Source of the DNA: Vitrella brassicaformis CCMP3155
Taxonomy: Eukaryota; Protista; Chromerida
Assembly (NCBI GenBank): GCA_001179505.1
Contig: CDMY01000345.1
Span: 45,776 to 109,775 of the forward strand
Direction of reading: 5' to 3'
Length of the DNA: 64,000 nucleotides
Below are positions 13,117 through 18,543 of the stretch, one piece after another. Positions within the stretch are counted from its first letter, which is position 1. Each line of letters opens with the position of its first letter. The position numbers were made by a program, and so were the translations under genes. The notes beneath the pieces were generated by a model. That model was not told where the DNA came from and ran no database searches. It was given only the letters and a program-made list of their open reading frames with translations.

Positions 13117-14397
13117 TTATCGGTCAAAGCGCGTCAACACATACAGAGTAGACGGCACATTCTCATACAGAGCAGCCACAACCGTCCCCTCTCTCAGTTC
13201 CTTGTCCGTGCCCCTCTGAAATATCTGCAGCCACTCGCCACTCAGCCGCCTACACCGCACATGTGCCCACACACCGCCGGCAGCCATGCCCTCCCTCCCA
13301 CACACACTGCAATCCTTCACGTCAGCTGAGGGGCAATCCACACGCTGTCCCCCCACCCACTGGTGCGCCTTGATCCACTTGATCTTCGCACATCTCCCGG
13401 CCGTCTCGCATCGATTGACGCCGTGTTTGTAAGGGTGTGATGGGGACTCGTCGGCCTCGGCTTGGCGAGTGAGGTCGGAGCTGTATAGGTAGCTCATGTG
13501 GCCTCCGAGGGAGTGGCAGACGGCGATGCAGTCGGCGGCCGAGAGAGAGAGGGGGGCGGTCGGTGTCTTGATGCAGCGACGGTCTCTGAAGGGCACGTTA
13601 TTGATGTTGTCCTCCTTGCTCAGGGAACATACGCAGCACCTGAACTCACAGACACATCCACACACAAGGGATGGAAGGATGGATGGATGGATGTCTCTAG
13701 TCAGCTTCACTCGGGAAAGAGCTCCTTCTGCCCTGATGTGCTCTTGATCTTTCGGTAGGCCTCGCTCTTTTGGAAGGTACCCCATGGCTCAACGGCGATG
13801 CCCTTTGTGGCCGGCAGTGTCGTGTTCTCAAAGCCAGGCGAAGAGGACCAGGGTTCGTAGTCACTGGGGATGAATATCCGGGGGTCCACCTTAATCACCT
13901 TTGTTGGCTCTTCTGCATGACACACAGAAACACACAGAGACACAGACAAACGTCTGTCTACCCACCCCAACCCCCCCACCCTTTGTCTCCGTCACGAGCA
14001 CATCCAACGGCACAAAGTCCTTCCTGAGATGACCCGCATTCATGGCCACATAGCCGTCGTAGCACCAGCCCACATCTTGACAGCTCCTGTCGACGTAGAA
14101 GGCGTATTGCGCCATGTGTCGCTTCGTGCTGCACACGCCATTGCACGTCTCGGCAGCAGCAGAAGGCGGCAGGAAGGTGCAGGAGCGGTGGGCGGGACGG
14201 GCTTGTCCTCCCTCAGCTCTCGACTGGCAGTGGCAGCAGCTGCGTACATGCCAGTGGATGGACAGAACAGAAAAGGCTCGAAAGTGGCCATCAGGGAGGG
14301 GAGGATAGTAGGGGTGCCTAGGTCCCTTACCCGGTGTATTCGGATTCGTTGTCGTCAGTGAGGGGTTTGACAGTGACTTGCCTGGCCGATTTGGCAT
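13117..14397 (-). CDS. Uncharacterised Cys-rich protein, paralog A (5' end uncertain)
   Basis: Spliced: ..IAVEPWGTFQKS..FPE|CCVCS..RRCIK..DCIAVC..RCETAGRC..DCP..CSVC..HVRC..LREGTVVAALY..LYVLTRFDR*. Motifs are shared with the genes at 14.7-16.5 and 16.7-17.9 kb. Confidence 0.65.
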
Positions 14398-14724
14398 GAT
14401 CGACGCTCTGCAGGCGTACTACATCCTCCTTTTGCTGAGGCCTGATTGCATATAATTAGAGACGTGTGAGCAGAGAGGAGAGCACGTGCCGCGTCGCACA
14501 TGCGTGGCTGCCGCTCACCGCGGCGTTGGGGATACGACGGGGCCGCTGCAGTGAAGTGCAACCATTCATCCACCCCCACCAAGCACAGACAAAGCCTCTG
14601 ACAAGTTGGCCCGGTCTCCACTTCTGTGTGCGGGTACAGAGGCCACCTTACCTGCCCGGTTTGTTCGCTGACGCTCGATTGGACACGGCCAGCAGAGGCA
14701 GGCTGCACACCAGCAGGATTTGCA

Positions 14725-16548
14725 ATGCCATCGATGACTCACGGAACCACGACCAACTCGAGCTCGCACAACTTCCCCCACGCCCCCCAGTCTGCATGCC
14801 AGTGTCGTCTCCCCCGAGATGCATTTGTTCGCAGTAGTCTCCCTTGTCGTGGCTGCTGCCACGGCCACCAAGATGACCATGCGGCATGGCGTCCTCTCCT
14901 CCATGAGAAACGCCCCCTCGGCGGTGCGCCTCACCCGAATGGTGCTCCGCGGCCTCTCAGGTGCATGAGGCCGGTGGTGTGTAGTCTGCAGGCAGAAACA
15001 TGACTGCGTCTCTCTGCCCTTCTGCTTTGCAATGTTTTGCAATGCACTGCACTGCAGGGCGAGACCGACTCCGCCAGCCAGTGTGCCGCCAGCTGCCGAG
15101 ATTGAGGAGTCATCCGAATCTGAGCCGTGGACGGGTGGGTCTGTGCCAGGCCCCAACGGTGAGGATGACATTGACGACGACGAGACTGAGGAGGAGGAGG
15201 AAATGTCTGTGCAAGATGAGGTACATATGTAAAGGGTGGCACCGCATGGGTAGACAGACAGACAGACAGACAGACAGCCAGACCATTCTCGAATACATGC
15301 ACCGCTGCACACAGGGCAGGGCATGCAGCCGATGCTGCACGCCGCGCACTTTTGTTCATTCACGTTGGATGATGGGTACAGGAGGACGAGGAGCTCGAGA
15401 GGGATCTCAGAGCCATCGCCGCAAAGAAGCAGACGCCAATCGACGTCAGCAAGCAGCAGTTTGGGGCAAACATGTATGAATTCAACAAGGACATCGACGT
15501 GCCGCCGGACGCCGAGCGGGAAAACCCCTCTATGGAGGAGGACGGTGTGTGTGTGCGAGATGATACTCATGAGACAGGCAGGACTTCTTCTTCCATCCAC
15601 TGCGCTGGTTTCGTGTGCAGAGGTGTTTCCGTACGTGAGCAAGAGAATGGATCCGCTGCTCACCCTTCGGACCTACGATGTCACCGTGGTGCCGTGGGAC
15701 GTTTTCCTGCAGAGCGGCTCGTCGCAGTGGCTGAGAGACGCCGAAGAGCAGGGAACCCGGCAAGAGAGCTTCTACCCTATGTGAGGGCGTGCGTGTGTGC
15801 ATCCACACCATAAGGCATCCATGTCTCCCTCCCTCTCTCTCTCTTTGTAGGTGTTGCGTGTGCTCCTCTGCCGCCAAGGCGGAAGACATCGACTTGCCCA
15901 ACACCAGATGCATCAAGGTGGGCAGACACCGATGATGTCGCACCACTGTGGATCGACTTCACTGGTTGATCGGGCCGCATACCTCGCAGGTAGGGCCCTA
16001 CATTCCGCCGCCCCCCTCCGGCCCCAGGCCCCGCATGTTTGGTCAAACCGACTGCCTCGTCGTCTTCGACAAGCAGGACCACCTCTGGGCGATCTTTTAC
16101 GGCAGTGTGGATGATGAGTTGGACCCGCAACACGAAATTCCTGGCGTGCGTGTTGCGGAGAGATCGGCATGTGAAAGGGTGGAGCAGTGCAACAAGAAGA
16201 ACGTGCATCTGGCGGTGAGAAAGGCGGAGAGTGGGGTCTGGACAAAGTGCTCAAAATCGGACCCGCCCGGCTCTTGTGGCTTGTGCTCGGGGAAAGAGCT
16301 GCCATCCCATATGGGCTTCATCCGGTGTGAGGAGGTCAGTGAAGAGACAGAGAGAGAGAGAGAGAGAGAGATAAGTGTCTGTTTGTATGCAGGTCGATGA
16401 GCCTCTGCTGGAGATTCTGAGGCATGGGAGCAATATGGGGCTGACTCCAGAGGTTGGGGACCTCGCCGCCGTCAGGTATTCGCTAGTCAGGGAGAATATC
16501 TATGTGCTGACCCAATTCGACGAACACATGCTTCACCGCACGAGCTGA
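14725..16548 (+). CDS. Uncharacterised Cys-rich protein, paralog B (5' end uncertain; acidic N-terminal region)
   Basis: Spliced: ..VTVVPWDVFLQS..FYPM|CCVCS..TRCIK|..DCLVV..ACERVEQC..TKC..CGLC..FIRCEE|VDEPLLEILRHG..EVGDLAAVRYSLVRENIYVLTQFDEHMLHRTS*. Confidence 0.65.
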
Positions 16549-16736
16549 TGCGTGGCACTGTTAGCTGAAATACGTACGGGACTCTTGGCACTCTCTTGGC
16601 CCCCGCTATGTCACTCTGCTGATGTGAATTGCTGGATACTCTCTGGTGTGTGAGCCTTCAAGACCTCATACATACGATGACATACACATACATGTGTTCG
16701 ACGATATGTCTCTCTCCCTGCTCATAATATTGACAC

Positions 16737-17913
16737 CTATACCAGCTGTGTAAGCACCCACACGCACTCGCTCTCCAAGTTGTACCGAAAGGCAACCACA
16801 TCGTGGACATGGATGCCCCCTGACGGCGGCGGCGTGCCTGTGCGCTCATACAGCCGATATACGTCGTCCACCTGCCTCTGGCTTTGCAGCCGATCACATC
16901 TGACGTACCTGATCAAAGCTCATACATCCATGGGTTACATGGCAGAGACACAGACACGATGATCGTCTTGTCTCGCCCACCATTTTCCCTTGGGGTCTCT
17001 CTGCCCGCATAGGGGACATTCGATGAGGTCCCCCGGGTCTCTGCACCGCTGTCTGCCACTCTTGTCCAAGACGGGCATGGCGAGAAAATGCCTCATGCAC
17101 CGACCGGCCGTCTCGCACTTGTTGAAAGGCTGGCCTGTCTGTGGGTCGTGCTTCCAATAGTGCTGCGGCTGTACTTGACCCGAGTGGTAGAACCACGTGT
17201 GGTCACTCCCAAAGGCAACACGACACACATGATAGCAGTCGCCGGTCTGCGAGGAGAACAAGCGCACGATGGAAAAGGGCATACACACATGCAGCTATCG
17301 GGCCTCTGTGTGCATACCCACCCGCCCCATAGGCGGTCCGCCGTCGAAAAGCCGCACCCCCGGGCCAGTCCTTCCCACCGGTGGGCCACTATGTTCATCG
17401 AAAGGGACAAACCTGGGCACCTTGACGCAGTGCCGCTCTTTCCAAGGGATCCTTGTGATGGCGTCTCCCGACCCCCCAATGCCCTGGTCTTCTCCCTCCG
17501 GGCTGTCAACGCACACGCAGCAGCTGATCGACCACACGCAAGTCACCACGAGCAATGTGTCTCTCTCTCAGGTGTCTGTCATATGCAAAGCCTGGGCACC
17601 TTGCGCCCACCCACTTTGGGAACGGCTCTCTGGCCATTGCTGTCTGGGCGTGTGAGAATGTCGTCAGCACTCTTCGGTGGTCTGGCGATCCCTCGAATGC
17701 GTCCCATCTCCTGACGATGACGTACACGCCATCCCCTCGCACCGTGTCATCAGGCGGTGGCCGCGGCGGAGGAAGGGTGTGCGGCTTGCGGGTGGGCGCT
17801 GGGGGTTCCTCTTTCCTGATCTCTGGTGTTGGAGTCGTCTGAGGCTCTTCTTCCGGCTTTTCTTGGTCATATATCGTGGCGCCTGGTGAGCTGGCATAAG
17901 CCATGTGGTCCAT
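16737..17913 (-). CDS. Uncharacterised Cys-rich protein, paralog C (may extend 5' toward ~18500)
   Basis: Spliced: ..VIVRRWDAFEGS..PFPN|CCVCV..RHCVK|TGDCYHVC..KCETAGRC..QRC..CPLC..KW|YVRCD..IHVHDVVAFRYNLESECVWVLTQLV*. Confidence 0.65.
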
Positions 17914-18543
17914 TTCTCTCGCATCAGCAAAGAGCCCGAGCCTGCAATATCATCAGAGATGTTGCAGCCTTCTCCCGTGCCGTGCCGGTGTCTCTGTCTG
18001 TCAAGCTCCCCACTTCTACCATTCCATGTCATCTGCCCTCTGGGGAAGTGAAGGTGAGGAGCTCGTGGCCCCGAGATGGGTCTCGTTCCAGTGGGAGTCA
18101 TCCTCCCCCTCGTCGCCAGGCAGCACGTACACATCCTTCCTGCACGTCACAAGCACTCATTCGGACATGTCGCGCTGTGTGGGTAGTATCCTACTTGTTG
18201 TCTTCCTCTCCGGTGATGGGCTGACGAGCGCTTTGCCGTCTGCGGTGACTCCGGTGAGGCCTGATGACAGACAAACAGACAAACAGTGAGACACTCCATC
18301 AGGCGAGACTCAGTGTCGCAAGCCATCGATGCCCACGTTGCAGACAGAAGCCATGAGGCAAGGATAAGGCAGAACAGATTCCCCGCGGAGTCCATTGAAG
18401 GGAATCCCAAGGGGGACTGGGCTGCATGCAAGAGCTCTGGGCCCCCACCGCCCCCACCCCTCCCTTCCACCACGGGCAGCCACGGGTTCTGGTGACGGCG
18501 GGCGAGGACACGAGCCAGCATCTGTAAGACGGTCTCTCAGTAT

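Follow-up and report, generated by a model that had tools for sequence, protein, structure and literature searches.

In a 64,000-nucleotide stretch of the genome of the chromerid Vitrella brassicaformis CCMP3155 (contig CDMY01000345.1, positions 45,776 to 109,775; hereafter the window, whose numbering is used unless a locus or scaffold is named), three adjacent genes, here called A, B, and C, encode proteins with a common C-terminal cysteine-rich domain of ~205 residues. The domain defines an undescribed family, confined on present data to this one species and made up of seven genes. The three proteins (accession no. CEM03599, CEM03600, and CEM03601) are all uncharacterized, and a literature search by accession number returned no paper that mentions them. 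We consider it fairly probable, on the strength of sequence features, that the domain is a species-restricted, secreted, disulfide-bonded binding module; the family is genuine but of an ordinary kind, that of lineage-specific secreted cysteine-rich proteins. The window is eukaryotic, with a G+C content of ~58% and short GT-AG introns, and no part of it resembles human, viral, or toxin sequence. Gene models of A, B, and C were obtained from the public annotation and homology, by mapping the annotated proteins back onto the window DNA and reading the splice sites. This exon mapping bore out the arrangement of three adjacent genes on the −, +, and − strands given in the original prediction, which had been made from the DNA letters and their open reading frames. 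The span it had assigned to them, 13117 to 17913, is too narrow: gene A begins at 14731 and gene C at 18395, such that the cluster extends from 13117 to 18395 and the 5' exons of gene C had been omitted.

BLASTP comparisons linked A with C (E = 7e-15; 27% identity), A with B (4e-11; 24%), and B with C (2e-8; 23%), and on these sequence matches the three are real paralogs. The ordered set of motifs first proposed for them, namely, VxPW/RWxxF, (F/Y)Px^CCVC, RxC(I/V)K, DC, CExxxxC, C, CxxC, (H/F/Y)(V/I)RC, and (Y/W)VLT (here and below, ^ marks a splice junction), recurs in all three proteins without change of order. A full-length alignment and identity matrix were prepared from six proteins of the family, with a seventh paralog on scaffold C770, which has no database protein, being used exon by exon. 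Across these six proteins the domain is 24 to 37% identical, a range in which synonymous sites are saturated. Eleven cysteines (C228, C229, C231, C249, C264, C304, C310, C329, C337, C340, and C356 in the numbering of A) are nevertheless invariant in all six. The proposed count of ~11 cysteines is thus accurate for the invariant set and has to be extended by a twelfth, C268, the second Cys of the DCxxxC motif, which is present in five of the six proteins and is Phe in B only. No histidine is invariant in the family alignment. Because the 11 core cysteines are intact at so low an overall identity, we take the scaffold to be under constraint, in keeping with the selection that had been suggested for it.

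We then determined the extent of the family by six-frame scans of the genome, in which profiles built from exons and from full-length proteins each recovered the same seven loci on four scaffolds. A, B, and C are therefore members of the family, as originally thought, but they do not make up the whole of it. Within the family, A is nearest to P0007, encoded upstream on its own scaffold (37%), and then to the gene on scaffold C738 (34%), and A, B, and C are not mutually nearest relatives; the tandem cluster is therefore old and not the outcome of a recent triplication. To look beyond the species, an exon-based profile of 179 positions was run with HMMER, without a word filter, against 1.84 billion representative proteins, a collection that includes UniRef, EukProt, and MMETSP entries. 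Six proteins were recovered at E ≤ 0.001, every one of them from Vitrella. Among these, P0006, which had been left out of profile building, matched at 5.3e-13 over profile positions 1 to 177 of 179, and this match is, at the level of sequence, an independent confirmation of the family. No relative outside Vitrella was found in this search of 1.84 billion representatives; as UniRef, EukProt, and MMETSP were covered, those of other sequenced alveolates should in principle have shown. The profile search, proposed at the outset as a check, thus returned Vitrella proteins only, and the view of an old, lineage-specific family stands. A scan of metagenome DNA with the degenerate motif N-x-C-E-T-A-G-R-C gave 11 matches, all of which were dismissed as chance, with stop codons adjoining the motif and no other family motif present.

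Searches of Pfam with every exon and the full-length proteins, at E values up to 10, yielded no family match for the domain. Accordingly, neither the confident full-length Pfam match that was looked for nor a match to any Pfam zinc-finger model was found, and the initial impression that RING, PHD, LIM, FYVE, and CW do not fit was borne out. Hits to Toxin_2 and Secapin, short toxin/peptide families, were spurious and below the cut-offs, and a PDB sequence-profile match to G-beta-5 (E = 0.79) was discarded as chance. The ESM Atlas gave no usable feature match, its structure matches having template-modeling scores of ≤0.34 on an Atlas model with a predicted local distance difference test score (pLDDT) of 0.36. 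With AlphaFold2, the last exon of A alone was modeled at a pLDDT of 59, and Foldseek found nothing with it. When full-length A was modeled with the six-sequence alignment, residues 191 to 400 formed a block with a pLDDT of 65 to 86, except for a loop at 283 to 301, and the linker was disordered. In this model the domain starts with the VxPW/RW strand, ~30 residues ahead of CCVC, and is predicted to be of mixed alpha/beta structure: CCVCSL and RRCIKT form strands, DCIAVC lies in a helix, and the C-terminal half is rich in strands, the last of which is YVLT. Foldseek with the full-length A model recovered no PDB match below an E of 0.1 (E = 0.16 or above), so that the proposed AlphaFold and Foldseek check on gene A gave no fold match. 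The highest Z from VIA-align, run across 48,161 representative chains, was 3.7 (FMN [flavin mononucleotide]-binding split barrels and defensins), a value that unrelated folds often exceed, and these matches were set aside as nonspecific. These fold searches used a shallow alignment of six sequences and the whole-domain model, and the absence of a fold match is, for such a model, no proof of a new fold.

The known fold that comes closest to part of the domain is PAN/apple, an adhesive domain common in alveolates and used by apicomplexan adhesins, in which a helix is packed on a five-stranded sheet and tied by conserved disulfides. The center of the new domain might be a highly diverged copy of this module set in lineage-specific extensions. 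Its RxC..(D/E)CxxxC, aromatic strand (FYS), and following C resemble the PAN_4 pattern S..CxxxC..C.FF.F..CwLK, DCIAVC is modeled by AlphaFold2 as a helix with strands on either side, and hhalign of the family alignment against 11 Vitrella PAN_4 domains picks exactly this central stretch, but with a probability of 0.26% and an E of 0.23 over 21 columns. The Vitrella genome has at least 73 PAN_4 matches, of which, in the genome-wide PF14295 search that recovered 73, none lies in the seven family genes. Neither PF14295 nor PF00024 matched the exons or full-length proteins at E values up to 10, the third PAN cysteine is absent, and no PAN structure occurs among the VIA-align matches listed or the Foldseek matches, both obtained with the whole-domain model (pLDDT, 65 to 86). 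With the failed profile test and the lack of a Pfam match, we rejected membership in PAN/apple and regard a diverged PAN core as improbable; the central part may still be a very remote relative. By analogy, the new domain would share with PAN_1 (PF00024) and PAN_4 (PF14295) an extracellular, disulfide-rich character and a local arrangement of CxxxC in a helix, an aromatic strand, and a further Cys. In contrast, PAN has ~50 residues, making the new domain about four times longer, and the latter has 12 cysteines in a different order, without the PAN cysteine before the aromatic strand. As a separate observation, the PAN_4 matches of Vitrella, found in six frames and mostly above the curated cut-off, represent a large adhesive repertoire for a free-living alga.

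Evidence on the location of these proteins comes from their N termini and their domain architectures. Each of the seven N termini carries an 11-residue stretch with a mean Kyte-Doolittle hydropathy of 2.6 to 3.5, whereas windows inside these proteins average 0.49 and never exceed 1.96. We accordingly assign to every protein a signal-peptide-like leader and no membrane span, the hydropathy windows revealing no internal segment hydrophobic enough for one in any of the seven. The domain is always found at or near the C terminus, after an acidic or proline-rich low-complexity linker. In P0006 (accession no. CEM02327.1), the order is signal peptide, TSP1, VWA, and then the new domain at residues 518 to 685, the former modules being recovered by Pfam as PF19028 (1.6e-13; 51.2 bits against a cut-off of 41), PF00090 (1.5e-7; 31.9 against 21.6), and PF00092 (9.3e-6; 26.4 against 23.8). 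The leaders, the lack of a membrane span, and the TSP1-VWA fusion together point to the secretory pathway. Clustered cysteines of proteins that transit the endoplasmic reticulum (ER) normally form disulfides, and it is for this reason that the cysteines of the domain are likely to be paired.

The same three features disfavor the multi-zinc domain that had been proposed. Such a domain would act inside the cell, in the nucleus or cytosol, as a binder of nucleic acid or protein, with about three zinc ions coordinated by its 11 or 12 cysteines. Its appeal lies in the CCVC and CxxC elements (CSVCG, CPLCG, CPMC, CPEC, and CPIC), which resemble zinc knuckles, in the equivalence of twelve cysteines to three Cys4 sites, and in the tolerance of B for one lost cysteine. 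Like RING, PHD, LIM, FYVE, CW, and zf-4CXXC_R1, the new domain is rich in cysteines and CxxC pairs; it is unlike them in Cys spacing, in having no conserved His, and in the secretory leaders of its proteins, and no hidden Markov model of these fingers matched it. Given hydrophobic leaders in all seven proteins, the joining of one member to TSP1 and VWA, the absence of an invariant histidine, the lack of any zinc-finger Pfam match at E values up to 10, and the lack of a PDB zinc protein in the sequence-profile and fold searches, we judge a zinc-binding role to be very unlikely.

A further alternative concerns the destination of the proteins. The bipartite plastid leader of chromerids opens with a signal peptide, so that the leaders seen here could instead route the proteins to the complex plastid, to a microneme-like or other secretory organelle, or to the ER lumen, where they would act. 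Structures resembling micronemes have indeed been reported in chromerids (Woo et al. 2015, PMC4501334). However, the sequence after the leader is an acidic or proline-rich low-complexity linker and not transit-peptide-like, no ER-retention motif was seen at the C termini, and TSP1 and VWA are surface or matrix modules; we therefore view an internal site of action as unlikely.

Against the preferred reading of a secreted, disulfide-bonded binding module stand several further points. The leaders were called from hydropathy alone; that of B is removed by the annotated splice after 8 nucleotides, and that of the C738 gene lies upstream of the annotated start. No transcripts were found for A, B, and C, whose clusters at 90% identity hold the genome-derived protein alone. 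The CCVC and CPxC motifs and the 12 cysteines would fit three Cys4 zinc sites too, and the 11 cysteines of B would leave one unpaired. As secretory organelles and the complex plastid are, in Vitrella, likewise reached by way of a signal peptide, an extracellular site is no more than probable, and the suggested binding function derives only from the domain company of one of the seven proteins.

Weighing these points, we still favor the secreted binding module. In the mechanism that we propose, the seven Vitrella gene products would enter the secretory pathway via an N-terminal signal peptide, and the C-terminal domain of ~205 residues would be stabilized by its 12 cysteines, which most likely pair into six disulfides. 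It would probably serve as a soluble extracellular binding or adhesion module, whose place could be the cell wall, the matrix of the sporangium, contacts between cells, or contacts with coral-holobiont partners; in P0006 it would occupy the ligand-binding end of an adhesin, after TSP1 and VWA. A bolder version is conceivable though doubtful. In it, an entirely new disulfide-rich fold would have arisen among vitrellids and would form the ligand-binding head of secreted adhesins, the TSP1-VWA protein among them, in a free-living relative of Apicomplexa. The domain would then be an invention independent of the apicomplexan micronemal adhesive domains and parallel to them, perhaps for wall building or coral-holobiont contact.

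The gene structures provide a further record of the history of the domain. Reading of the splice sites upheld the phase-2 intron described just before CCVC in A (GA^GTGAAG..CAG^G), B (AT^GTGAGG..TAG^G), and C (AA^GTGGGT..CAG^C). An intron of this phase before CCxC is common to six of the seven family genes (A, B, C, and three further paralogs), the C323 gene being without it and encoding residues 397 to 602 in a single exon, and the remaining intron positions of the domain differ between paralogs. This pattern is consistent with genes that duplicated long ago and have since gained or lost introns. The intron after CIK/CVK that B and C were said to share is present in B (RCIK^VGPY; phase 0), but in the annotation of C the intron comes 33 codons later. 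The gene C exon reads through HCVK-VPRFVPFDEHSGPPVGRTGPGVRLFDGGPPMGR (annotated as HCVK-VPRFVPFDEH...PMGR), and the retained stretch lines up with CIM-VPTFRPVQEGKAPRTGVGSSF (VPTFRPVQEG...) in one of the paralogs; since the splicing of that paralog is backed by a transcript, the stretch in gene C is probably coding. This support comes from one paralog, P0007, of whose genome-annotated protein MMETSP Transcript_46259 (P0001) is an exact substring that spans three introns, including the one before CCVC.

In addition to its C-terminal domain, gene A has in its N-terminal part what is probably a degenerate half-copy of the same domain. A separate phase-2 intron immediately precedes CCHC (GG^GTAAGG ... 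CAG^C), and the exon is collinear with the N-terminal half of the domain, giving weak collinear BLASTP pieces and an hhalign match to the family profile with an E of 1.3e-3 and a probability of 18.7% over 39 columns. AlphaFold2 returned no confident structure for this region. An origin by exon duplication followed by degeneration is suggestive on these sequence grounds, not proven.

The features of the cluster and of the other family members are collected in Table 1. A and B are divergent, with a spacer of 87 bp (14732 to 14818) between their start codons, which implies either that their 5' untranslated regions overlap or that a bidirectional promoter of very small size lies between them. B and C are convergent, their stop codons being 188 bp apart (16548 and 16737). 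In B, the ATG followed by the unspliced open frame gives MHLFAVVSLVVAAATA, which is signal-peptide-like and is removed by the annotated splice. The annotated 8-nucleotide first exon (region 14819 to 15060, + strand) uses a weak GTTCGC donor, no other in-phase donor was found in the leader frame, and the annotated 5' end of B is probably a gene-model error. Likewise, CEM31944.1 (L002:313-500, scaffold C738) begins at an internal Met, and an upstream in-frame ATG restores the leader listed in Table 1; the annotation therefore probably misses the 5' end of the gene. The C770 gene is not among the protein-database matches and may be unannotated or mis-modeled.

Two features of the low-complexity regions were also observed. 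A linker motif, W-x-SSSPG(F/Y), occurs upstream of the domain as WSSSPGF in A (13830 to 13850, − strand) and in the C770 gene (L020:1149-1349), with the variants WTGGSVPGP in B (near 15059 to 15220, + strand) and W..ASSPGY in P0007 (L005:2032-2499); it could be a processing or glycosylation site. P0007 also has a Lys/Pro-rich C-terminal tail of ~100 residues (L005:751-1092, − strand) with repeated AVRPAVAP units, ending in the acidic EGGEDETEEDEGDYYDYY (DYYDYY), which resembles tyrosine-sulfation sites. Acidic tails of the DYYDYY type are typical tyrosine-sulfation sites of secreted proteins.

Table 1. Features of the three-gene cluster (window positions) and of the further family members
Feature	Positions	Strand	Product or encoded sequence	Remark
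Gene A	13117-14731	-	CEM03599.1, protein P0003, 400 amino acids	Annotated protein mapped onto window
Gene A, exons	14654-14731, 14518-14547, 14330-14440, 13981-14238, 13710-13913, 13120-13638	-		Good to ~2 nt; stop 13117-13119
Gene A, first exon	14654-14731	-	MALQILLVCSLPLLAVSN	Signal-peptide-like
Gene A, candidate half-copy	13981-14238	-	CCHC..HRSC..ETCNGVC..YAFY..SCQDVGWC	Degenerate; N-terminal part
Gene A, domain-coding part	13120-13913	-	Residues ~195-400	
Gene A, exon	13710-13913	-	...VEPWGTF...ELFP(E)	Phase-2 intron next
Gene A, exon	13120-13638	-	CCVC through YVLTRFDR	Single exon
Gene B	14819-16548	+	CEM03600.1, protein P0004, 353 amino acids	
Gene B, 5' exons	14819-14826, 15059-15220, 15382-15543	+		14819-14826, annotated first coding exon, only 8 nt
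Gene B, domain exon	15620-15781	+	VVPWDVF..FYPM	
Gene B, domain exon	15852-15917	+	CCVC..RCIK	
Gene B, exon	15990-16334	+	VGPY..DCLVVF..CERVEQC..CGLC..IRCEE	
Gene B, last exon	16393-16545	+	..YVLTQFDEH..	Stop 16546-16548
Gene C	16737-18395	-	CEM03601.1, protein P0002, 403 amino acids	
Gene C, 5' exons	18336-18395, 18194-18259, 18019-18138	-	MDSAGNLFCLILASWLLSAT (18336-18395)	
Gene C, domain exon	17617-17940	-	..VIVRRWDAF..PFP	
Gene C, domain exon	17322-17522	-	CCVC..HCVKVPRFVPF..PMGR	
Gene C, exon	16980-17246	-	TGDCYHVC..CETAGRC..CPLCG..KGKW	
Gene C, last exon	16740-16907	-	YVRC..WVLTQLV	Stop 16737-16739
Fourth gene	Same scaffold (C345), ~20 kb upstream		CEM03586.1, P0007	Leader MAKSAAPLLPLLLLVVVVVASLALA
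C323 gene	Scaffold C323		CEM02327.1, P0006	Leader MQSFLSLAICLALAGQGSA
C738 gene	Scaffold C738		CEM31944.1	Leader MAAVFAAAVAVTLFLGVAEG
C770 gene	Scaffold C770, ~194300-195400		Clear leader, linker, and domain exons	Leader MYVFFVALALLVPALSFH

Apicomplexan parasites adhere to their hosts with TSP1 and VWA building blocks, and in its signal peptide, TSP1, and VWA, P0006 is comparable to the TRAP/MIC2-type adhesins of Apicomplexa. It differs from them in lacking a transmembrane helix and cytoplasmic tail and in ending in the new Cys domain, and the six other family members are without TSP1 and VWA. Chromerids are reported to have many secreted proteins of TSP1/VWA architecture with no orthology to apicomplexan TRAP, and no chromerid TRAP ortholog was found (Woo et al. 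2015, PMC4501334). As a taxon-restricted domain with fixed cysteines, found in secreted or surface proteins of a small gene family, the new domain may also be compared with lineage-specific extracellular domains of alveolates such as CPW-WPC (PF09717) and 6-Cys s48/45; it has another Cys pattern, is not matched by either in the Pfam scan, and belongs to one species on available sequence data.

The scope of the finding is limited to one species, and protists commonly have lineage-specific secreted Cys-rich families. One practical outcome is that a single new domain definition could be applied to seven entries now labeled "uncharacterized protein"; corrections are also needed in at least two gene models. 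The family also offers a compact set of seven genes in which to ask how extracellular domains arise and are spread by exon duplication. If the reading proposed here is true, Vitrella built its own extracellular Cys-rich module and attached it to TSP1 and VWA, which would provide a concrete case for the idea that the apicomplexan extracellular toolkit was diversifying in free-living ancestors (Woo et al. 2015, PMC4501334).

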